Origin: Rebecca billardiae RCC1528
Lineage: Eukaryota > Protista > Haptophyta
Length of the DNA stretch: 64,000 nucleotides
NCBI GenBank assembly: GCA_965240325.2
Contig: OZ251227.1
Location: forward strand, 1-64,000
Direction: 5' to 3'
Numbering within the stretch: position 1 is the first letter of the stretch; each line of letters starts with the position of its first letter. This document shows positions 29,847 through 40,258 of this stretch, in pieces. Position numbers and translations under genes: made by a program. The notes below the pieces were generated by a model. The model ran no database searches. It had not been told where the DNA came from and saw nothing but the letters and a program-made list of their open reading frames with translations.

Positions 29847-31538
29847 TCACGACTCCTGCATGAAGCCGATGGGCGCGGAGGCGCGCGGCGCGTCCGGCCC
29901 GTCGGCGCCGTGCGGCAGCTGGCAGGCCGGCAGCGCGCGTCCGTGTGCGTGGAGGTGCTGGTGGAAGGGCGAGAGCACCGGCGGCTGCGCGCCCGTGCAC
30001 GCGGGCCGCCCGCCGCCCAGCCCGGGCGCGTGCGCGCCGCCGGCCGCGGACAGGCGCGGCAGCGGCATCCCGCCGGGCATGCCGCCGTCCTCGGCGACGG
30101 GCGCGCTCCCGACGTCCGCCGCCATCGCCGCGTCCAGGCCGGCCGCGGAGAGGGCCGGGCGCGGCTCGGCGACGGCGGGGCCCCACACGGGCGGCTGCGC
30201 GCGCGCCGCGCAGCCCGGCACGCAGTTGGCGGCGGGGCCCCTGGGGCCTCCCGCGCCGAGGAGCGGCTGCGGCGGCACGGCCGCGCCCGCCGCCGCGGCC
30301 GCGCTCGCGCCGCCGCCGGCCGCGGCGGCCGCGGCGGCCGCGGCGGCGGTGGGCGCGAGCTGCTGCGCGATCACGCCGAGCGAGTGCGCGCCCGCCGCGC
30401 CCAGCTGCAGCACGTGCCGGTACTGCGGGAAGTTGAGCTCGCGGCCGAGGTTGTGCTCGATGATGAACGCGTCGTAGGCGAGCGCCGCCTCCTCCTCCGT
30501 CGCGTAGATCCCCAGGTGGTGGTACTTGCGCTTGGACATGCACGAGGCGCGCCACGGCCGCTGCGGGTTGGAGCGCGAGTGGTGCACGCCCGCAAACCGG
30601 GACGCGATGCCGCGCGTCGACTTGGAGGACGCCTTCGCGTCGGCGGCGGACATCTTGTCGTCGCTCTGGCTGGGGAAGTTGACGCGCCGCTCCAGCCCGC
30701 GGTCGCGCACGAAGTCGTCGTACACCTGTGCCGCCTCCTCCTGGCAGCGGAAGTAGCCGAGGTGGTGCTGCTTGCCCATCCAGTAGCACGCGGCCGTCCA
30801 CGGCTTGCGCTTCTTGCCCGAGCGGTGCACGCCCACAAACTTGGAGGACATGCGCGCGACGTCGGTGGCGGGGGAGACGGCGCCGCCGCCGGCGCCGCCG
30901 GCGCCACCGCCGGTCGCGCCGCTGCTGGGCGCGGGTGCACTCGCGCTCGCGGCGGCGGCCGCGGCGGCGGCGGCCGCTGCCGCCTGCGCTTGCGCTTGCG
31001 CGTGCGCCTGCGCTTGCGCCTGCGCTTGCGCGTGCGCTTGCGCCTGCGCCTGGGCCTGCACCTGGGCCTGGACCTGGGCGTGCGCCTGGGCCTGGGCGTG
31101 CGCCTGCGCCTGGGCGTGCGCGTGCGCGTGCGCTTGCGCTTGCGCTTGCGCTTGCGCTTGCGCTTGCGCGTGCGCTTGCGCCTGGGCATGCGCCTGGGCC
31201 TGGGCGGCGGCCTGCGCCGCTTGCGCGTGCGCGTGCGCCAGTGGCATGTGCGCGGGCACGGCCGAGCCCGAGGGGTAGCCTATGGCGGGGATGCACGCGC
31301 CCGCCATGCGGTTGGCGAGCGCCCCGTAACCGCCGCCGACGCCGACGCCCGTCGCGCCGGCGCCCACGCCCGCACTCGACGGGTGCGCGACAGGGCAGCC
31401 CGACACGAGCCCTGCGCACGAGCTGCCGCCGCCGTGCAGCGCAGAGCCGAGCGCGGCGCCGAGCGCGAGGAGGCGCGCGTGCTGGCTCGCGCCATCGTAG
31501 TCCACGCCACCGGCTGCGCCTAGACCGTCGTCCTCCAT
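29847..31538 (-). CDS. Transcription factor with two AP2/ERF-type DNA-binding domains and a (QA)n tract
   Basis: SSKFVGVH...WTA...HLGYF..QEEAAQVYD...VNFP and SRFAGVH...WRA...HLGIY.TEEEAALAYD...LNFP. Confidence 0.88.
   Translation of the reverse strand: MEDDGLGAAGGVDYDGASQHARLLALGAALGSALHGGGSSCAGLVSGCPVAHPSSAGVGAGATGVGVGGGYGALANRMAGACIPAIGYPSGSAVPAHMPLAHAHAQAAQAAAQAQAHAQAQAHAQAQAQAQAQAQAHAHAHAQAQAHAQAQAHAQVQAQVQAQAQAQAHAQAQAQAQAHAQAQAQAAAAAAAAAAAASASAPAPSSGATGGGAGGAGGGAVSPATDVARMSSKFVGVHRSGKKRKPWTAACYWMGKQHHLGYFRCQEEAAQVYDDFVRDRGLERRVNFPSQSDDKMSAADAKASSKSTRGIASRFAGVHHSRSNPQRPWRASCMSKRKYHHLGIYATEEEAALAYDAFIIEHNLGRELNFPQYRHVLQLGAAGAHSLGVIAQQLAPTAAAAAAAAAAGGGASAAAAAGAAVPPQPLLGAGGPRGPAANCVPGCAARAQPPVWGPAVAEPRPALSAAGLDAAMAADVGSAPVAEDGGMPGGMPLPRLSAAGGAHAPGLGGGRPACTGAQPPVLSPFHQHLHAHGRALPACQLPHGADGPDAPRASAPIGFMQES
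30985..31240 (-). repeat. Coding hexamer repeat encoding (Gln/His-Ala)n
   Basis: TGCGCT/TGCGCC/TGGGCC arrays on the plus strand, translating to QAQAHAQAQ on the minus strand. Confidence 0.9.
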
Positions 31539-32422
31539 GCCTCCTGGAATGGCCCTATGGTACACGGCGCGCGCGCAGCGCGTACCTGTACTGGTTCGTC
31601 GAGGTCGGGAGTTGCTCGGCAGGCTGGGATCAAGGATCACGGGCTCCCCGCCGTTCACGACGGTCCCAGAAGACTAAAAACCCGCTGAGATGGACTAAGA
31701 TCGCTTCAAGATTGTATCCGGGGTGTGTCGCCACGTCGCTCGTCTCGCCGCTCGAGCTATCCACTTCGCGGAAGGAGCCGAACCACCGAAAGCACGGGAG
31801 TCAGAGTGGTGAGTGAGATACATACCCAGATTCGAGAGCGGAGTGCGCTACATACGTAGAATTCAATCGATGCAATCTGTTGGTCGCAACCCTGCCATAC
31901 GCCGGTAAAAAAGCGTGTGTTAAACGCCATGGATCCAACCTGAACCCCTCCTCATACAGATCACCCCTCCCCATACAGATCACTCAAGGATTTAGTTAGG
32001 TGCGCGCAGCTTCACGCGCACGTCAATAGCTCTGACTGAGCTGCCAGTTTGAGTAGCTTACGGATGCAAGTATGATTATCATGATACTCACAGATGCCGT
32101 GGTTTCCCCGGGGGCTTGGGGAGGGGTTCATAGCCCTCTAAGCTAGTGCAACTCTTCATAATAATCATGCCTTCATAAGGGTTAACAGCGAAATCAAAGT
32201 TGTCACCGTCAAACGCCATCAAATACACATTTTGGCATTTCATGAGTAATCTCGCCCGATCTGAGTACTATTAGATATGATGACGATGATAACCGTGCAA
32301 GTTCAAACTCTGAAGGCAGGCCAGGCAACTACCGGAAGGCGCATGGGCGCATAGCCTCCGCCCAAGGTCCGCCTTGGCTTCCCAAAGTCCTCCACTCTCG
32401 TGGGCCGAGCACTGCCCCTGCA

Positions 32423-35400
32423 TCACTCGAGCCCGAGCCGCTTGCGCCCGATGTCGAGCGCCATGATGACAAACTTGCGGTGGTCGGCGTAGAGCAGGGC
32501 CGAGTCCTCCGCGAGCACGTGCTCCTCGAGGTCGAGCCACTTGGCCGCCATCGCGTCGGAGCCGCCCTGCAGCGTGAGCTGCGCGGCGAGGTCGTCGTCG
32601 ATGACAAACAGCCGCACGGTCGTCTCCATCCACGCGTTGTCCGTGTTGCGCGGGTCGTCCACGTACCCCTCGTACACCGGCTGCGCGCGCGGCAGCGGGC
32701 GGCACGGCGGGCGCGGCGGCGCGTGCGCGCCGGCGGGCGGCGGCGTTGGCAGGCGGCGCGCGGCGAGAAGGCGGCGGCGCGGGTTCAGCCGGGGCGCGCG
32801 CGCGCGCCGACCGCGGGCGGCGCGCGGCGGGCGGCCGCACGCGCCTCTTCCTCGCCATCGCCGCGGCCCCGGCGCGCGCGCGCACCTCGCCGCCCGAGGC
32901 GAAGACCTCGTCCAGCCGGTCCTCGAGCTCGTCCTTGAGCGCCTCGTCCTCCACGGCGGAGGCCTCCTCGGAGAACTCGCGCCGCAGCGTCTCGGAGACG
33001 TGCTCGCCGTCGTCCACCATCCCGCCGGGGATGGCCCACTTGCCGCCGTCGCCGCGCTGGATCGCCACCATCTGGTACACGGGCCGCAGCACGGCCGGGC
33101 GCGCGGACAGCCCGGCGCGCGGCCCCGGCCTGCGGCGCAGCACGATCGGGTCGGCCGCCTGCGCGCGCGCGCGGCGCGCGGGGGCGGGCGGGTCGCGTGA
33201 GCGCGCGCGCGCGGCCGTCGCGCGCGCGCGCGGCCGCGGCCGCGCGCACGTGGTTGGGCCCCCACTTGCCGAGCAGCCCGCGGCCGCTGATGCCCGTGCG
33301 GCCGCGCGGGTTGAGCGGCCGGCCGATCGCGTTGCACACGATCGCCTGCTCAAACGAGCGGCGGTAGCGGAAGTCGACGGTGGCGGCGTCGGGGTGGTCC
33401 GCCCACGGCGGCCTGGGCTTGCCCTTCTCCGGCTCGCCCAGCACGACGGGGTGCGTCCACTCGGTCGGCTCGTACCCCGCCCACTCGACCTCCCACGGCA
33501 CGCGCCCGTCCGGCACCGCGCTGCGCTTGCCCGCATACGCCGGGTTCTCCTCGGAGCGCGCCTTGTGGTGCAGCAGCCAGTCGTGCTTCGAGATGTCCTC
33601 CGTGCCGAGCTCGCGCAGCCGCGACCTGGGCGCGGAGATGAGGTGCGAGTGCAGCCCCTCCACCGCCGCGGCCACGCCCCTCACCGCCGCCTCGAGCCCC
33701 TTCATCCGCTCGTCGATGTTCTCCCGGTCCTCGAGCTGCTTGGTCTCGAGCGCCTTGATGGTGACGTGCGCCTCGTCCACGCGGTGGCCCACGTCTGCGC
33801 GCGCCTCCTCCTCCTTGGCGCGCACGTACGCGTGGAAGGCGCGCGTCTCGTCCTGGTGCTCGTACTCGTGCTCGAAGTGCGACGTGCCGCTCGAGCGCGC
33901 GGACGCGGGCGGCGAGCCGGGCAGCAGCGGCTCGGGCTCGGGCGAGACGGCCGAGCGCGCGCCGCAGCACAGCTCGCGCGCTCGCACCGCGAGCCGTGCT
34001 GGCACGAACAGCAGGTTGAGCGGCGGCGGCGTGGACGTGGCGGTCGTCTCGTAGTAGTCGACGAGGAGCATGTGCTCGTACTTCCACTCGATGAGCGCCA
34101 GCGCCATCACCTTGGTGTACGTCTCTGATGCATCCCCCCCCCGCGCGCGCGCGCAGCGGAGGCGGGGCGACGCCGGGGAGGGCGCGCGCGCTGAGCGGCC
34201 GCGCGCGGGGCGCGGCCGCGCGGCCGGCGCGCGCGGGGCGCGCGGGGTGCGGGGTGCGCGCGCGCACCGCTCATCATGGCGATCAGCAGGTTGAGCAGCA
34301 GCACCTGCATGATCACCATCAGCACGACGAGCGCGAGCGCGGGCACGTACGGCCGGTGCGCCTCGAGCCGGGCCACGTCAAAGTCGCCAAACTGAGCCGC
34401 AGCCGCAGCCGCAGCCGCAGCAGCCGCAGCCGCAGGGGGCGCCGCGCGCGGTCGGAGGGACGCACGCACGCGCGCCGGAGCGCGGGGTCGGCGGCCGGGG
34501 GTGGACGCATGAGCGAGGGCGCGGCGGCGGCGGCGCGTGCGAGCGCGCGCCCCGCGCCCCTGTGCCCGCGCGCGCGCACCAGCGCCCAGATGGGCAGGAA
34601 CGCCGGCCCGGTGGGGCCGGAGAAGCCGACGCTGCGGAAGCCGTCCGCGCCGGGCAGAGACGAGTCGCCGCCCAGCTCGGAGGAGGAGGTGGCGAGGTCG
34701 TAGCCGGGCACGAGCGCGGTGAAGCCGAAGCCGAAGCCGAGCACGACGAACACCATCACCGCGAGCCACTTGAGGATGTTCTTCTGGAACATCTCGCCCA
34801 TGCAGATGATGAGCGCGCCCACGTCGTGGAATTGCATCAGCGTCTCGCCCAGGAAGCGGTAGAAGGTGGCGCCCGACGCGCCCGCCAGCATCAGCGGGAA
34901 GAGCCAGCCGGTGAACCAGTCGACGAGCGCGGTGCCGGCGGGCTGGCGCCACAGCAGCGCGAGGTACAGCGCGCGGAGCACCGCGAGCGCCGAGTTGAAC
35001 ACGAGCGCGAGCGTGTCGATGTACGCGAACGAGGGCGAGGCGGCGCGCGCGTGCAGCCAGCGGCGGCGCGCCGGCCGCGTCTCGAGCCAGTCGGCGCCCA
35101 TCCCGAGGACCCACAGGCCGAAGACGAGCTCGAGGCGGAGCTGCACCGCGCCGGGCCACTTGCCCAGCGAGTGCGGCGCGGTGATCTCCGTGAGCACCAT
35201 CAGCGCGCCCAGCACCAGCGTGAACCCCGAGTAGGTGACGAGCGTGCGCGCCCAGAACTTGACCACGGGGATGCTGTAGAGCTGGTGCCACGCCGCGCGC
35301 GTGCGCTGGTACCGGCCCGCACCCGCGCTGTAGCCGAACGCGGCGGGGCCGAGCGTGTCCGAGCGCGCGGGCGAGGGCGGGATCGGCGGCGTCTCGGGCG

Positions 35401-38400
35401 TGAGCCCGCCGAAGCGGTTCGCCCCCGCGCCCGCCTCGTCCTCGTCGTCCTCGTGCGCCGTCTCCTGCCGCACGAAGATGGGCGGAGGGATGGCGCACGC
35501 GCCAACGGCGCGCGCGCCACCGCTGCTGCACGCGCCACCGCGGCCCGCGGAGGCGGACGACGCGCCGGCGGCGGAGGGCGGCGGCTCGGCGGCGGCGGCG
35601 GCGTCGACGGGCACGGCCACCTCCTCCTCGCCGCCCGACTCGTCCGACGACGCCGGGCTGAAGTTGAAGATGGACGCGCCGAGCGGCTTGCGCGGCGCGT
35701 CGCCCGCCGCCGCCTTCTTGGCGGCGGCGCCGGCGCCGGCGGCGCCGCCCGGCCCGTCCGCGCCGTACTCCTCGCCGCGGTCGTCGTCGTAGTCGTTGTC
35801 CTGCACCTGCGCGAGCGCCCAGCCCACGCCCAGCCGGTTCGCCACGTCCTGCGCCGCGCCCCACGGCAGCACCATCTTGAGCACGATCTTCCAGTTGGGC
35901 GCCGTGTCGTCGACGAAGCGCAGACTCGCGACGCCGTCGCGCGAGGCGGCGCTGCCGAAGCCGCGCACGCCCGTGCGCGCGCGCCGCCCCGCGCCGGTCC
36001 AGCGCTTGGCCATGATGAGCTGGCAGTAGCGGTGCGCGATGAACGACTTGGCGCGCAGCTGGATCGCCAGGTCGATCGCCGTCTGCCCGCTCACCACGTG
36101 CTCCAGCACGTCGGACGCGACCGCAAACGTGGTGCGCGCGTCCTTGGCGGGCGGCCGTATCTGCTCGAGCACGTCGAGCGACACCTGCAGCCAGTGCTCG
36201 CGCATCGGCTCGATCTCGTCGCGGTGCTTGCGCCCCTGCGCGTCGTTGTACATCATGCGGTAGCACACGTCCGCCGCGAGCAGCGCGAGCCGCAGGTGCT
36301 GCCTCGAGAAGCGCCACAGCACGGTGGCGAGCTCCTGCTCGCCCATCAGCACGGCCCAGAAGAAGACGTCCTGCAGCTGCGTGCACAGCATCGGACGCAC
36401 CGAGCCCAGCCGCGCGCGCAGCGGCGAGCCGCGCACGCCGCCGCCGCTGCCGCCGGCGGCGTCGGCGGCGGCGCCGCCGCCGAGCCCGCCGCCCATCGCG
36501 CTCCGCCCGCGCGAGAGCGCGCGGCCCATCGCGCCGGTCACGCGTCGGCGCGCCGGGCTGGTCTGTGGCGTCGTCTGCGGCGTGGTGGCGCGCTCCGCCT
36601 CGAGCTGGTGCAGCTCGGCGTCCGCGAGGTCAAAGTGCATGCCGTGGTGCTCGGGCAGCAGCCACTGCTCGATGAAGCGGCGGAACTCGCCCGCCTCGCG
36701 CACGAACCACCGCTCCGCCGCCGCGTGCGCCTCCGTGTCCGAGCGCTTGAGGTAGGACACGGGCGCACGCAGCATCCGCCTGCGCTCTCTGAACACGCCC
36801 ACCGGCTGCAGCGAGAGCGGGGAGAGCCGGCTGGGCTCGAGCAGCGAGGCGCGGCCGAGGGAGGCGGAGCGCGCGGCCGAGATGAACGCCGCCGCGCCCA
36901 TCGCCGCGCTGCACCCCGACGACGCGCGGCGCATCGGCGCGTCGATCGAGTCGGAGCTCACGCCGCCCGCGCACCCGCCCGCGCACCCGCCCGCGCCGCC
37001 GAGCGCGCCGAGCGAGCCCGAGCGGCTGAAGCCGGCGCCGGCGCCGCCGAGCGCGCCGACCACCGCGCCGATGCTGCCCGAGCGGCTGTGGTTGGCGGAG
37101 GCGGCGCCGCCGCCGCTCGCGCCCACCGCGCCGAGGCTGCCCGAGCGGCTGCGGTTGGCGTCGGCGGCGCACGCCGCGTCCGCGCCCGCGCCCGCGCCCG
37201 CGCTCGGCGGCGTGGCGCCGGCGGCGCCCGCGCCGCCGCCCGCGTCGCTGGTGGGCGTGGCGAGGCCGGCCGGCGGCGGCGTCGTCGCCGGCGGCGCCGG
37301 CGCCTTCCCCGCGCTGCTCATCCGGCTCGCCGCCGCGGCGAGCGCGAAGCTGGCGGAGGTGGAGAGCCGGCCGCTCGCGCGGATGTACCGGCCCGGGTCT
37401 GAGGCGGTGCGCTCGGTGAGCGGCGGGAGCGCGAGCTCGGCCTCCTCCTCCTTCTCGAGGCGGTACAGCTTGGCGGAGATGGAGGACTGCAGCTTGCGGA
37501 AGATGCGGAACCGGTTCTTCTCCGACTGCATGTACAGCCGCGAGAGCATCACCCCCGCGATGTCCGCCCCGTTCGAGAGCAGCATCGTGACCACGTCCGC
37601 GCGCTGCGTCTCGAGCGCCAGCTGCAGCGACGCGCGCATCGAGGACTGCTGCTGCTGCGCGAGGCCGGCGGGGTGCGCGCCGGCGGCGGCGGCGGGCGAC
37701 GGGTCGCGCGGCACGCCGCGGCTCGCCGCCGCCCGCCGCGCCAGTATCCGCTCGATCATCTCCTCGTTGTCCCACACGATCGCGAGCTCGAGCAGCTTGT
37801 CCTCGGGCAGCGTCGGGTGGCGCGCGACCGCGGACAGGATCGAGAGCGAGATGTCGGTGGTGGAGTCGGAGCCGAGCTCGAAGAGCTCGATCAGCTCGCG
37901 CCGCGCGTACAGCTGGCGCAGCTGCTCCACCACCGCCGGGCGCGAGTACTTGCTCGCGATCTCCGGCGTGGTGCGCAGCAGGCGCTGCTCGAGCGCCAGC
38001 AGCGCGTCCTTTGCCTTCTCCACCTCCTGCTTGGCCGCGCGCACCGCGCGCTTGCCGTCCTGCCGCGCGGCCTTCACCTTGGCCTTGGCGGCGCGCACGC
38101 GCTCGGTGGCGCGCGCGATCTCGCCCGCCTCCTTCGGCGTGCGCGTCAAGAAGTCGCGGATCGCCGACGCCGCGCCGAGCGAGCCCGCGACCACGACGAC
38201 GGGCGTCTGGTTGCGCACGGCCTGCAGCACGGTGAGCAGCGTGTTCGGCCCGCCCTGCACGACGAGCAGCACGGCGGGGAGGTCGTCCTCGTGCTCGCAG
38301 TACGCGCGCTCGATGGCGGCGCGAAAGGCCACCTCGCCGCCCCACGCCGCGCGCCCCTTCTCCCCGTTGTCCACCAGCAGCAGGTGCGTGTGGTGCGGCT

Positions 38401-38950
38401 CGAGCGCCGCGCCGTCGATGTCGTTCGAGTCCTCCCCGTACGCGTACTCAGCCGTGCGGTACTTGTGCACGGCGCGGCCCTTGAGCGGGCGGAGCTCGCG
38501 CTCGATGAGCTCGGAGCCGACCACGTTGCCGTACAGCGCGACGCCGATCAGCGGGATGTCCGGGTGCGCCGCCAGCGCGTCGCCCACGTGCTTCATCACG
38601 CCGGTCGCAGAGCCGCCCGTGAACACCCACGCGTTCGTGATCTGCGCGGCGCGCACGAGGCCCTCGCGGAAGACGCGCTGGAGGCGCGGCAGCATCTTGA
38701 AGTCCTGGGCCGAGCCCGTCACCGAGATGATGATCGTCGGCTTGCCGTAGTACTCGTCCACCTGCCAGTCGTTGTCCAGCATGCGCGCGATGCGGCGCGG
38801 CAGCTTCTCCGCGTCCACCGCGCGCCGCACGTCGATGTGCAGCACCTTGGCGGGCTCGCGCAGCTGGCCGGAGGAGCGCGCGACCGAGGCGGTGTACCGC
38901 AGGTTGCACACGCGCAGCCGCGAGTCGAGGTCGTCGGGATCGGAGCCCAT
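32423..38950 (-). CDS. TRPM2: TRPM2-like cation channel with N-terminal SLOG/MHR domains and C-terminal NUDT9-homology ADP-ribose pyrophosphatase; exons 38950-34580, 34391-34268, 34124-33250, 33158-32886, 32680-32423
   Basis: MHR1/2: PTIIISVTGSAQDF, AWVFTGG..TGVMKHVGDA, LEPHHTHLLLVDNG, LLVVQGGPNTL. MHR3/4: LAIVWD, DVFFWAVL, FIAHRYCQ. Pore W.LFGDF, S6 LLLNLLIAMMS, TRP box EWKY. NUDT9H: [48 protein letters not shown].EEA and VYEGYVDDPRNTDNAWMET. Confidence 0.93.
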
Positions 38951-39331
38951 CTTCTCCTGCGCGCCGGCGCGCGCCGAGCCGCCCGATCCGCCGCCGCCGC
39001 CGCCGCTGCCGCTCGCGGCCCACGCCTCGCGCGGGGGGGCGGGAGCGCCGGGGCGCGCGACGACCCGCTGGTCGAAGAGGCGCGTGGTCGACGGGCCGCC
39101 GACCCTCGCGCGCAGACGGGGCGAAGGCGCCTGCGCTGCTCGCGGCCGCCAACGAGCCGCACCCCCGGCAGCAGCGGAGTGCAACGCAACGTCGTTGTGA
39201 TGTTCCGCGCTGGCCGCCCAAAGAACCGCTGACGACTGTCTTGGCGGCGCTGAGTGCTGAGCGAAAGGCGCCGGACCGCCGCCCGCGCCCGGAAACAGCC
39301 AGCACGAAGCGTCATTTCTGGTACATCCACG

Positions 39332-40258
39332 ATGGCGGGCGACTTCGCACGCGCGCAGGCGGCCAAGGCGGCGGGGAACGCGCACTACGCACAGGGGCGG
39401 CACGACGCGGCGCGCGAGGCGTACGCCGGGGCGCTCGCGCTGCTCGCGCGCGCCACGGAGGGCGACGCCGCGCGGGCGCTGCGCGCCGCGTGCCTGTGCA
39501 ACCGCGCGGCGGCCGCGCTCGCGCTGCAGGCGTGGGCGGACGCGGCCGCCGACTGCGCGGCGTGCCTCGACGAGCTGCGCGCGTGCGCGGCGCCGACGGA
39601 CGAGCTGCGCGTGCTGCGGCGCAAGGCGCTCTTCCGCCGCGCGCGCGCGTCCGAGGCCCTCGACGAGCCGGACGCCGCCGCCGACGGGTACGCGGCCTCG
39701 GTGCTGCGCTGCGAGCGCGGCTCCGAGCAGGGCGGCGAGGCGCTCGGCGCGCTGCACCGCGTGCTGACGGCGGCGGGCGGCGCGCCGGCGCCGTCGGACG
39801 AGGAGGTGCTCGGCCGCTCGGTCGACGCGCTGCTCGCCCTCGCCGCCGGCGCCGTCCCCGAGGACGAGGCCGACGCCGACGCGGAGGGCGGCGGCGCTGG
39901 CGGCGAGGGCGGCGGCGAGCGCGCGGCGCCGGCCGCCGCGCCCGCGCTGCCACCCGAGCACAAGCGCCTCGTGTACGCCGCGCTGCTCAGCGTGCTGCGC
40001 GAGCGCACGCACAAGCGCACGCCGGCGTTCAAGGCCTTCCTCCGGCGCGACGGCGCGCGCCTCGTGCACACGTGCGTGCACTCGATGGAGGGCGACTGGA
40101 TGGCGGACGCCAAGCGCGGCACGCTCAGAGACGCGGACGCGCTCGCACGGCTGCCGGGCGTGCGCGCGGCGATGGCGGCGCTCGAGCTCAACGCCGTCGG
40201 GCTGCACACGTCCGACGAGGCCAGCGCGGGGGCGCACGGCCCCGGCTGCACGCACTGA
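39332..40258 (+). CDS. TPR-repeat (co-chaperone-type) protein
   Basis: AKAAGNAHYAQGRHDAAREAYAGAL, CLCNRAAAALALQAWADAAADC and KALFRRARA form three TPR motifs. Confidence 0.8.
   Translation: MAGDFARAQAAKAAGNAHYAQGRHDAAREAYAGALALLARATEGDAARALRAACLCNRAAAALALQAWADAAADCAACLDELRACAAPTDELRVLRRKALFRRARASEALDEPDAAADGYAASVLRCERGSEQGGEALGALHRVLTAAGGAPAPSDEEVLGRSVDALLALAAGAVPEDEADADAEGGGAGGEGGGERAAPAAAPALPPEHKRLVYAALLSVLRERTHKRTPAFKAFLRRDGARLVHTCVHSMEGDWMADAKRGTLRDADALARLPGVRAAMAALELNAVGLHTSDEASAGAHGPGCTH

Follow-up and report, generated by a model that had tools for sequence, protein, structure and literature searches.

A haptophyte TRPM-like channel gene ending in a NUDT9-type domain with a canonical Nudix box

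Background

The closest described counterparts of the gene presented here are Nematostella TRPM2 (nvTRPM2; 6CO7) and the Salpingoeca rosetta TRPM2 chanzyme (8SR7). In both, the modules run in the same order as in the algal gene, from SLOG/MHR1-2 through a helical linker to a C-terminal NUDT9-homology domain (NUDT9H), and the likeness extends to an intact REFxEE Nudix box, an acidic G-D/E filter and an LLLNLLIA S6. The algal gene differs from them in its strongly diverged S1-S5, in its long disordered inserts and in its host, which is a haptophyte and not a holozoan. Vertebrate TRPM2 has the same overall architecture, but its Nudix box is degenerate, whereas that of the algal gene is canonical; the vertebrate NUDT9H is a ligand-binding gating module (PMC6461439, PMC7201885). 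Human NUDT9 (1Q33), a mitochondrial ADP-ribose pyrophosphatase, is a free soluble enzyme, whereas the algal domain is the C-terminal end of a channel protein and lies on a non-holozoan branch of the NUDT9 family. Both the TRPM channels and the TRPM2 channel-enzyme have been traced to the common ancestor of choanoflagellates and animals (PMC13143021; bioRxiv 10.64898/2026.06.15.732245; 10.1101/2023.03.16.533055). In the literature searched, no paper describing algal TRPM chanzymes or mentioning algal copies was found.

Gene structure and host

The window (the whole stretch of 64,000 nucleotides analysed) carries on its minus strand, at 38950..32423, a gene that extends from an ATG to the last base of a TGA stop, which is exactly the span given in the initial annotation. 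Five exons separated by GT..AG introns encode a protein of 1,966 amino acids:

34580..38950, minus strand: exon 1, 1,457 codons, a single ORF from the ATG at 38950; GC3 0.98
34392..34579, minus strand: intron 1, 188 nt, GTGCGCGCGC...CAG; read from DNA
34268..34391, minus strand: exon 2, 124 nt, ending in phase 1; selectivity filter FGDFD and S6 (LLLNLLIAMMS)
34125..34267, minus strand: intron 2, 143 nt; read from DNA
33250..34124, minus strand: exon 3, 875 nt, one ORF; TRP helix, helical/coiled-coil linker and N-terminal half of NUDT9H
33159..33249, minus strand: intron 3, 91 nt, between ...GKWGPNH and AADPIV...; read from DNA
32886..33158, minus strand: exon 4, 91 codons; NUDT9H core, including the Nudix box at 33026-32961
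32681..32885, minus strand: intron 4, 205 nt; read from DNA
32423..32680, minus strand: exon 5, C-terminal part of NUDT9H (YEGYVDDPRNTDNAWMET...); TGA stop at 32425-32423

Exon 1 encodes MHR1-4, Ala/Gly/Ser-rich disordered stretches and the helices S1-S5 as far as the pore helix (...PIWAL), and its start codon lies 13 codons upstream of the conserved RVCNLRY motif, as it does in the relatives P0001 and P0002. Hidden introns within this exon were considered and rejected, as the only donor-like sites (GTGCGCG) fall in conserved coding codons. All four introns begin with GTGCGCGCG and finish with CAG, and in the model frame GC3 is 0.95-1.00 in every exon, against a GC2 of 0.27-0.55. Each join agrees with relatives that are uninterrupted at that point: WAL/FGDFD at intron 1 with the ORF of L001, ...IAMMS/ETYTKV... 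at intron 2 with P0002 and P0137, GKWGPNHA(A/V)DPIV at intron 3 with L001 and L013, which read through it, and ...GGE/PVYEGYVDDP at intron 4 with intronless relatives. The four splice joins are predicted from the GT..AG signals, the reading frame, the GC3 and these intronless relatives. The exons were searched singly, and uninterrupted natural relatives served as stand-ins for the spliced protein in searches, folds and trees.

The host is a photosynthetic, very GC-rich haptophyte alga outside the opisthokonts, as had been supposed from the window: an exact match to the PRYM02 18S probe lies within its SSU rRNA genes (probe match and Rfam on the locus), and 61 LHC matches are present in its genome. 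The genome contains eight TRPM-like genes distributed over five contigs, and five of them, including the gene described here, carry NUDT9H. This gene is part of a divergent subclade, and other sequenced samples contain relatives; further relatives are found in Prymnesium parvum, in MMETSP and among many marine metagenome proteins.

Channel modules

The channel part of the protein and the beginning of the enzyme part comprise the following features:

38108..38809, minus strand: SLOG/MHR1-2 domain, aa 48-281; homologue of the TRPM2 N-terminal ADPR site
36032..36382, minus strand: TRPM2-like domain (MHR3-4 part), aa 857-973; PF25508
34706..35278, minus strand: transmembrane helices S1-S5, aa about 1225-1415; from jackhmmer and an AF2 model
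33570-33250, minus strand: N-terminal half of NUDT9H, within exon 3

Both N-terminal hallmarks of TRPM proteins are recognised in exon 1. For SLOG/MHR1-2, PF18139 (LSDAT_euk) matches at 7.4e-44 (150.6 bits, Pfam cut-off 25.7), and the best PDB match of the exon is 6CO7 (3e-44), with the SLOG alignment spanning 6CO7 residues 136-336. For MHR3-4, the TRPM2-like domain PF25508 matches at 1e-10 (42.3 bits, cut-off 27) and aligns with 6CO7 residues 566-708. A features search of the ESM Atlas also pointed to TRPM, with animal taxa only.

The membrane part is more divergent. A jackhmmer search seeded by the nvTRPM2 transmembrane domain extends to aa 1274-1435 (S2-S5), and phmmer of S1-S5 against the PDB gave no significant match to solved TRPMs. 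The AF2 model of S1-S5 consists of long helices with a mean pLDDT of 75.6. In a Foldseek search with this model the top rows are all TRP channels, yet their E-values are 0.17 or higher and none reaches 0.001 or better. VIA-align Z scores of 8-11 were obtained for PKD2, TRPV2, TRPM8 and TRPM4 and also for unrelated helical bundles; as many 6TM channels score alike, these values do not discriminate and were rejected as evidence for a TRPM-specific fold. The match of the modelled S1-S5 is generic for TRP/VGIC channels. Chlamydomonas reinhardtii TRP1 (6PW5), an algal TRP channel, is a weak fold match to the same model and was not among the SLOG or NUDT9 matches; it is not known to have a SLOG domain or a NUDT9H.

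Ion_trans matches exon 2 weakly, at 16.7 bits, and the relative P0002 at 27.3 bits (Pfam), and the filter is an acidic FGD. S6 (LLLNLLIAMMS) and the TRP segment (IEWKYEH) align to LLLNLLIAIF and VWKFQRY of nvTRPM2, and the TRP helix of exon 3 contains, besides IEWKYEH, the element PPPLNLL. These alignments predict a six-transmembrane TRP pore domain whose S6 and TRP box are of the TRPM type. The segment that leads from the TRP helix to NUDT9H includes a conserved helical stretch (DETRAFHAY...LETKQLEDRE...); for the C-terminal coiled-coil tetramerisation helix of TRPM channels, a search of exon 3 with PF16519 returned no match. Judged from these modules, the combination of a SLOG domain with a TRP channel is present in haptophytes.

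The NUDT9H domain

The Nudix box GGMVDDGEHVSETLRREFSEEA at 33026-32961 is a canonical REF-x-EE box, as in the described chanzymes, and its match is far beyond chance. PF00293 (NUDIX) is found on exon 4 at 9.5e-10 (Pfam). The best PDB match of exons 3, 4 and 5 is human NUDT9, 1Q33 (5e-17, 2e-16 and 4e-12), followed by 6CO7 and 8SR7. Aa 185-291 of exon 3 align to 1Q33 residues 4-111 (4.6e-17), exon 4 to residues 112-200 (1.8e-16) and exon 5 to residues 206-272 (4.3e-12); residues 4-272 are covered in this way, including the Nudix box and the YxGYVDDPRNTDNAWMET motif. The N-terminal subdomain, the Nudix core and the DDPRNTDNAW motif that characterise the NUDT9 family are all found in exons 3-5. 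In the alignment of NUDT9H domains the algal gene retains both the catalytic box and the signature motifs of NUDT9 intact, and Puma TRPM2 is gapped at the position of REFxEE. Hydrolysis of ADP-ribose by the algal domain is likely. The initial annotation is borne out by these matches, both in describing a complete gene with TRPM N-terminal modules, pore, TRP helix and NUDT9H and in reporting an intact canonical Nudix box fused to a channel.

The NUDT9 profile search retrieved 848 family representatives at 1e-30 or better. NUDT9H also occurs fused to OSCA-type channels, S9 peptidases, ART domains, NAD-synthesis enzymes and a kinase, and in some TRPM-like proteins it sits internally. To judge from these fusions, NUDT9H is a promiscuous module.

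Proposed function and the ligand sites

Taken as a whole, the explanation that we consider probable is that of an intact haptophyte nuclear gene for a TRPM-like cation channel ending in a cytosolic NUDT9-type ADP-ribose pyrophosphatase domain, with the order SLOG/MHR1-2, MHR3-4, six transmembrane helices with an acidic FGD filter, TRPM-type S6 and TRP box, helical linker and NUDT9H. The protein would form a tetrameric cation channel, probably with passage of Ca2+, and the tethered enzyme would hydrolyse ADP-ribose or a close analogue at the channel. By analogy with the Nematostella and Salpingoeca TRPM2 chanzymes, this hydrolysis could locally end or shape the nucleotide signal.

The SLOG domain has probably kept the ability to bind a nucleotide-derived ligand, through contacts that would be altered because Gly replaces the Arg of the alpha-phosphate and Trp replaces Tyr. 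At the positions of nvTRPM2 T143/T179/Y264/R271/T307/R329 the algal protein has T/S/W/R/T/G, so that the full residue set of the chanzymes is not present. The equivalent of R329 is Gly in every algal TRPM-like copy. In nvTRPM2, R329A shifts the EC50 from 0.31 to 121 uM, and loss of R329 has the largest effect among the site residues (PMC7201885, from which residue numbering and mutant effects were taken). The Ca2+ site of the Ca2+-activated TRPM2/4/5/8 group (E893/Q896/N918/D921/E1110 in nvTRPM2) is also changed: N918 is replaced by Ala, E1110 by Tyr, and the S2 segment GADWLE is not confidently alignable. Only D921, one of the five TRPM Ca2+ ligands, is retained in the subclade of this gene, whereas the E-Q-N-D-E site is complete in holozoans and in the Prymnesium-type algal clade. 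Co-activation by Ca2+ through the canonical S2-S3/TRP site has probably been lost in the subclade. The Prymnesium-type clade comprises the Prymnesium parvum protein AB1Y20_016041 (P0032) together with P0005 and P0019. Its members are TRPM-like channels of haptophytes or marine protists, with a C-terminal NUDT9H, an intact Nudix box and the same SGG + W pocket; their database entries are 'hypothetical proteins', and no paper on any of the three was found in the literature searched.

Gating by ADP-ribose and Ca2+ as in TRPM2 therefore cannot be assumed, because the R329 equivalent is Gly and the Ca2+ site is reduced to its Asp. The proposal that this is an enzymatically active ADP-ribose-gated channel outside opisthokonts holds for the host, is plausible from sequence as regards catalytic activity, and is not supported as regards TRPM2-like gating. 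Given both losses, the channel may not be regulated by ADP-ribose at all. The SLOG domain would then sense another ligand or none, and NUDT9H would be a membrane-tethered housekeeping ADPRase or a non-catalytic module. Such a reading is favoured, besides the Gly at R329 and the lost Ca2+ site, by the R271 equivalent, a variable position in the closest paralogues (G, V, A, M). It is likewise favoured by the family as a whole: a search of the genome found no free-standing NUDT9, so the cell may obtain its NUDT9 activity from the fused copies; the box of paralogue C8 reads REFTEAA; and no Nudix box was found within the DNA examined around paralogue C10c. We nevertheless regard it as unlikely. Of the six positions of the N-terminal site, five (T, S, W, R, T) are either identical or conservatively replaced, and the SGG + W signature is uniform across all algal TRPM-likes, which suggests a conserved altered pocket rather than decay. 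In addition, NUDT9H has been attached to channels repeatedly, which speaks for a functional link.

Phylogeny and origin of the fusion

The domain order shared with nvTRPM2 and srTRPM2 favours common descent, and the initial annotation had taken the gene for a TRPM2 orthologue that dates the fusion. On that account one fusion preceded the split of haptophytes and opisthokonts and was inherited vertically as an ADP-ribose- and Ca2+-gated chanzyme. Separate phylogenies, which had been called for, were built for the SLOG and NUDT9H domains. In the SLOG tree the clade of this gene (100/100) lies outside the holozoan clan (100/99), and it is separate from the Prymnesium-type clade, both being well-supported groups; that the algal channels fall outside and not inside the holozoan clan accords with orthology, as does the retention of all five Ca2+ ligands by the Prymnesium-type clade. 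In the NUDT9H tree the paralogue L013 and the relative L001 (same 100/100 clade) stand in for the domain of this gene, itself split over three exons. Holozoan TRPM2 NUDT9H and animal stand-alone NUDT9, including those of fish, Mytilus and Strigamia, form one clan (100/99) with every algal fused domain outside it. In the AU test, a single clan of all channel-fused domains is rejected (log-likelihood difference 134.5, p 8e-67), and a clan made up of the algal fused domains is not rejected (p 0.28-0.39).

Because free animal NUDT9 groups with TRPM2 NUDT9H and the fused clan is rejected, the gene does not simply mean that the TRPM2 fusion is older than supposed, and the algal NUDT9H is not an orthologue of that in nvTRPM2 or 8SR7. 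The promiscuity of NUDT9H and the absence from this gene of R329 and of four of the five Ca2+ ligands also count against orthology. Both trees are unrooted, most rows of non-animal stand-alone NUDT9 are without taxon labels, and several of the short rows represent pieces of fused genes, so one ancient fusion, from which holozoans later released free NUDT9, may also account for the trees; fused domains would be paraphyletic if free NUDT9 and other fusions had been released from TRPM2-like genes lineage by lineage. Even so, we judge true orthology to be improbable. Most likely, the algal lineage acquired its layout of channel plus NUDT9H in parallel with holozoans, a haptophyte SLOG-TRP channel having been joined independently to a NUDT9 that is catalytically intact by sequence.

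A wider proposal can be put forward tentatively, with slightly less than even confidence. Channel-tethered ADP-ribose hydrolases would have arisen more than once, haptophytes and other marine protists having built TRPM-like chanzymes in parallel to holozoans and also placed NUDT9H inside TRPM-likes and on OSCA-type channels. Gating in the subclade would then rely on a SLOG pocket and a Ca2+ dependence unlike those of characterised TRPMs. If this proposal is true, ADP-ribose-type nucleotides would be a widespread and unexplored second messenger for phytoplankton ion channels. The algal copies offer a natural comparison set for the role of a tethered enzyme in a channel, and the algal TRPM-likes are candidate Ca2+ entry pathways in ecologically important phytoplankton. 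The value of these results is limited by their being entirely in silico and by the existence of unnamed database entries with the same architecture.

Horizontal transfer and integrity of the gene

Recent horizontal transfer of the whole gene from an animal or choanoflagellate, which could be suspected from best PDB matches that are animal proteins and from an architecture known in the literature from holozoans only, is very improbable: both trees place the algal sequences outside strongly supported holozoan clans, the gene has host-type introns and a GC3 of 0.98, the eight paralogues occupy five contigs, and relatives are present in Prymnesium parvum, MMETSP and marine metagenomes.

That a neighbouring channel gene and a separate NUDT9 were mistaken for one gene, a suspicion that could arise from four introns inferred from DNA alone, is scarcely credible: the join of channel and enzyme is independent of inferred splicing because exon 3, as one ORF, itself holds the TRP box, the linker and NUDT9 residues 4-111, and neither a start codon nor a promoter-sized gap separates the two parts. 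The expected joining of channel and Nudix exons in one gene is also supported by paralogues and relatives. The ORF of L001 is continuous from SLOG into NUDT9H and that of L013 from the TRP box to the end of NUDT9H; the two parts lie within single ORFs in P0137 and P0142, and continuity is likewise seen in L014, P0005 and AB1Y20_016041 and in one ORF of the MMETSP transcript P0019.

Gene model and domain content

The window gene of Rebecca billardiae has a channel-enzyme architecture with intact catalytic motifs. The G+C content of the window is about 75%, and a long minus-strand open reading frame, beginning with the ATG at 38950, encodes all cytosolic TRPM modules together with helices S1-S5; downstream of it the reading frame shifts four times. 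The following model was read from the DNA.

Exons and introns of the channel gene
38950-34580, minus strand, exon 1
34392-34579, minus strand, intron 1 (188 nt)
34391-34268, minus strand, exon 2
34125-34267, minus strand, intron 2 (143 nt)
34124-33250, minus strand, exon 3
33159-33249, minus strand, intron 3 (91 nt)
33158-32886, minus strand, exon 4
32681-32885, minus strand, intron 4 (205 nt)
32680-32423, minus strand, exon 5

The extended donor GTGCGCGCG and the acceptor CAG are common to all four introns, the G+C of which is uniformly 86-93%. The spliced gene comprises 5,898 coding bases (1,966 residues), and in the frame of the model G+C at third codon positions is 0.95-1.00 in each of the five exons, against 0.27-0.55 at second positions. 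Donor-like GTGCGCG strings within exon 1 sit in conserved codons, so no hidden intron is seen there. The span 32423-38950 proposed in the initial annotation is exactly the stop-to-start extent of this model. The C7 paralogue also has introns at these positions; there they remain in frame, and ORF callers read through them as Arg/Ala-rich "protein".

Each exon was used as a separate query. Exon 1 matches the Pfam family LSDAT_euk (SLOG in TRPM; 7e-44, aa 48-281) and the TRPM2-like domain (aa 857-973), and among solved structures it finds Nematostella vectensis TRPM2 first (nvTRPM2, 6CO7; 3e-44), followed by TRPM3, TRPM1, TRPM7, TRPM2, TRPM8, TRPM5 and TRPM4. For exons 3 (aa 185-291), 4 and 5 the top solved match is human NUDT9 (1Q33; 5e-17, 2e-16 and 4e-12, respectively), followed by 6CO7 and the Salpingoeca chanzyme 8SR7; exon 4 also gives a Pfam NUDIX match. 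The canonical Nudix box claimed initially is present, reading GGMVDDGEHVSETLRREFSEEA at 33026-32961, and the NUDT9 signature YEGYVDDPRNTDNAWMET is intact as well; a mammalian TRPM2 aligned with these sequences has a degenerate box. The selectivity filter FGDFD and the S6 segment LLLNLLIAMMS in exon 2, and the TRP helix (IEWKYEH ... PPPLNLL) that opens exon 3, align to nvTRPM2.

S1-S5 are far more diverged than the rest of the channel. With phmmer they gave no significant match to solved TRPMs; they are reached by an iterated search that starts from the nvTRPM2 transmembrane domain. The AF2 model of this region (mean pLDDT 75.6) has only generic TRP/6TM structural matches: in Foldseek a TRP channel stands in every top row, at E >= 0.17, and the VIA Z of 8-11 is a range covered by the chance level for helical bundles.

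Channel and enzyme in a single gene

The channel-enzyme join is independent of the inferred splice sites, because the TRP box, a helical linker and the counterpart of NUDT9 residues 4-111 all lie in the single ORF of exon 3 and because the same join recurs in other sequences. In L001, a relative with about 50% identity on a Logan contig (SRR30872635), one ORF spans SLOG, pore, S6, the TRP box and the linker and continues into NUDT9H; the remainder of its NUDT9H is intronless, and it is uninterrupted at every intron position of the window model. The host paralogue L013 extends from the TRP box through the end of NUDT9H in one ORF, and the environmental proteins P0137 (S6 to NUDT9H) and P0142 (MHR3-4 to NUDT9H) are likewise each a single ORF. 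In the Prymnesium-type clade, P0005 (2,033 aa) combines SLOG and the TRPM2 domain with channel and NUDIX; P0019, a transcript from MMETSP, has channel and NUDIX in a complete ORF, and its layout is shared by P0032, which NCBI lists as a "hypothetical protein" from Prymnesium parvum. On these comparisons the locus is almost certainly a real single gene.

The host lies outside the opisthokonts, as had been supposed. The Haptophyta-specific 20-mer probe PRYM02, of "very good" quality (PMC7970053), has five exact matches on contig C20, and the one place checked (L023) lies within a full-length eukaryotic SSU rRNA gene on the strand expected for the probe; in the genome (72 Mb, 41 contigs) the light-harvesting family Chloroa_b-bind is also matched 61 times. 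Together these identify the host as an alga. The SSU rRNA gene at L023 adjoins 5.8S. The PRYM02 sites (126710, 182333, 264132, 289782 and 353024, one on the opposite strand) are 25-80 kb apart, and therefore the rDNA units appear dispersed, not packed into a single tight tandem array.

The literature searched on TRPM2, NUDT9, LSDAT or TRP channels of algae, haptophytes, Emiliania and dinoflagellates yielded no account of this architecture in organisms other than holozoans. Recent evolutionary papers, in which algae are unsampled, assign the fusion of TRPM and NUDT9H to the holozoan lineage, and one Gephyrocapsa preprint merely names "TRPM" among diploid-upregulated transporters. The initial observation is confirmed; its interpretation is in part supported.

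Origin of the fusion

An algal NUDT9H profile matched 4,140 representatives, including 848 at <= 1e-30; many of the short anonymous NUDT9 rows are fragments of fused genes. A word search from the NUDT9H of P0005 recovered named long proteins, including holozoan TRPM2s (the 6CO7 sequence among them), a Salpingoeca kinase fusion, thraustochytrid peptidase fusions, and ART-domain, NAD-synthesis and OSCA-type (RSN1_7TM) fusions. The unrooted NUDT9H tree (LG+C20 PMSF) holds 50 domains of known architecture. Because window exons 3-5 were kept unjoined, the window domain is represented in it by L013 and L001, which are 59-62% identical to those exons and share its 100/100 clade in the SLOG tree.

All holozoan TRPM2 NUDT9H domains form one clan (100/99) with animal stand-alone NUDT9 (fish, Mytilus, Strigamia) and the Salpingoeca kinase fusion, and every algal channel NUDT9H falls outside it. 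Forcing all channel-fused domains together lowers the log-likelihood by 134.5 and is rejected by the AU test (p 8e-67), a hypothesis taken from the initial annotation and tested after a FastTree overview had been seen; forcing the algal channel domains together is not rejected (p 0.28-0.39). The simplest reading is that NUDT9 tracks the organismal lineage and would have been recruited separately to the TRPM-like channels of holozoans and of algae, and on the tree we lean towards such a parallel origin. One old fusion, from which free NUDT9 was later released in holozoans, is a possible alternative.

The SLOG tree (53 rows, with exon 1 of the window gene itself) also has a holozoan clan (100/99), with the algal sequences in several groups outside it; nothing in this tree suggests a recent transfer from animals. 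The window gene, three paralogues and two Logan relatives form the 100/100 clade, which has a long stem (1.31). With the algal enzyme domains outside the holozoan clan of the NUDT9H tree and a single fused clan rejected, the gene does not simply extend the age of the TRPM2-type fusion as first proposed.

Other arrangements of the domain were also seen. In the metagenome and Logan proteins P0043, P0044, P0048, P0049 and P0055, NUDT9H is N-terminal on OSCA/TMEM63-type channels (RSN1_7TM confirmed by Pfam in P0043 and P0055), so that a further ion-channel type, unrelated to the first, carries this module. In seven TRPM-like proteins (P0013, P0014, P0022, P0024, P0025, P0027 and P0029) it lies between SLOG and MHR3-4 instead of C-terminally; P0013 has SLOG at 65-279, NUDIX at 526-644, the TRPM2 domain at 1168-1282 and Ion_trans at 1513-1658. 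EF-hands occur in P0022 as well as in the related giants P0015, P0017, P0018 and P0020.

Ligand sites and predicted function

In nvTRPM2 the N-terminal ADPR contacts are T143, T179, Y264, R271, T307 and R329, and with R329A the EC50 rises from 0.31 to 121 uM (PMC7201885); all six residues were found at those numbers in the 6CO7 sequence. At these positions the window gene has T, S, W, R, T and G. Trp at 264 and Gly at 329 (motif SGG) are present in all algal TRPM-likes of the alignment, whereas nearly all holozoan rows have Tyr or Phe at 264 and Arg or Lys at 329 (Gln in two). At position 271 the window copy keeps Arg, and its clade has Gly, Val, Ala and Met. Holozoans and the Prymnesium-type clade have all five Ca2+ ligands (E893/Q896/N918/D921/E1110). 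The clade of the window gene retains D921 alone, with N918 replaced by Ala and E1110 by Tyr, and S2 without confident alignment. The initial description as a TRPM2-type chanzyme is supported for the completeness of the gene, its modules and the Nudix box; given the changes at R329 and at the Ca2+ site, TRPM2-like gating by ADPR and Ca2+ cannot be presumed.

The protein would assemble into a tetrameric cation channel whose filter is acidic, and the tethered enzyme would cleave ADP-ribose or an analogue beside it, as do the chanzymes characterised from invertebrates and choanoflagellates. Judged from its motifs, the predicted NUDT9H domain is quite probably an active hydrolase. The SLOG pocket probably still holds a nucleotide-type ligand through different contacts, and canonical Ca2+ co-activation has probably been lost in this subclade; ADPR-type gating of the channel is somewhat doubtful.

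Paralogues and neighbouring genes

The TRPM SLOG domain matches eight loci in the host genome, including the window gene, and for five of the eight, again including it, NUDT9H is matched 4.5-5 kb further downstream in the same orientation.

Further SLOG genes of the host genome (four of the seven with downstream NUDT9H)
C5, 1275198
C5, 1289362
C3, 1770880
C7, 587671-592758
C10, 343931-349074
C8, 2140450-2146093
C10, 2063009-2068797

All NUDT9 matches lie downstream of SLOG loci, and no stand-alone NUDT9 was seen in this genome. The Nudix box is canonical in the window gene and in copies C10b and C7, and degenerate in copy C8 (REFTEAA); copy C10c keeps GYVDDERNTDHAW, with no Nudix box in the DNA stretch examined there.

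Directly upstream of the channel gene start, a divergently oriented 334-aa ORF (39254-40258, plus strand) appears helical-repeat-like by eye and has no Pfam match. The neighbouring ORF at 29847-31658 (minus strand) scores 21.7 bits against Pfam AP2, under the cut-off, and contains a pair of AP2/ERF-like repeats (...YHLGxY...EEAAxAYD...) alongside long runs of Ala/Gln/His dipeptides.
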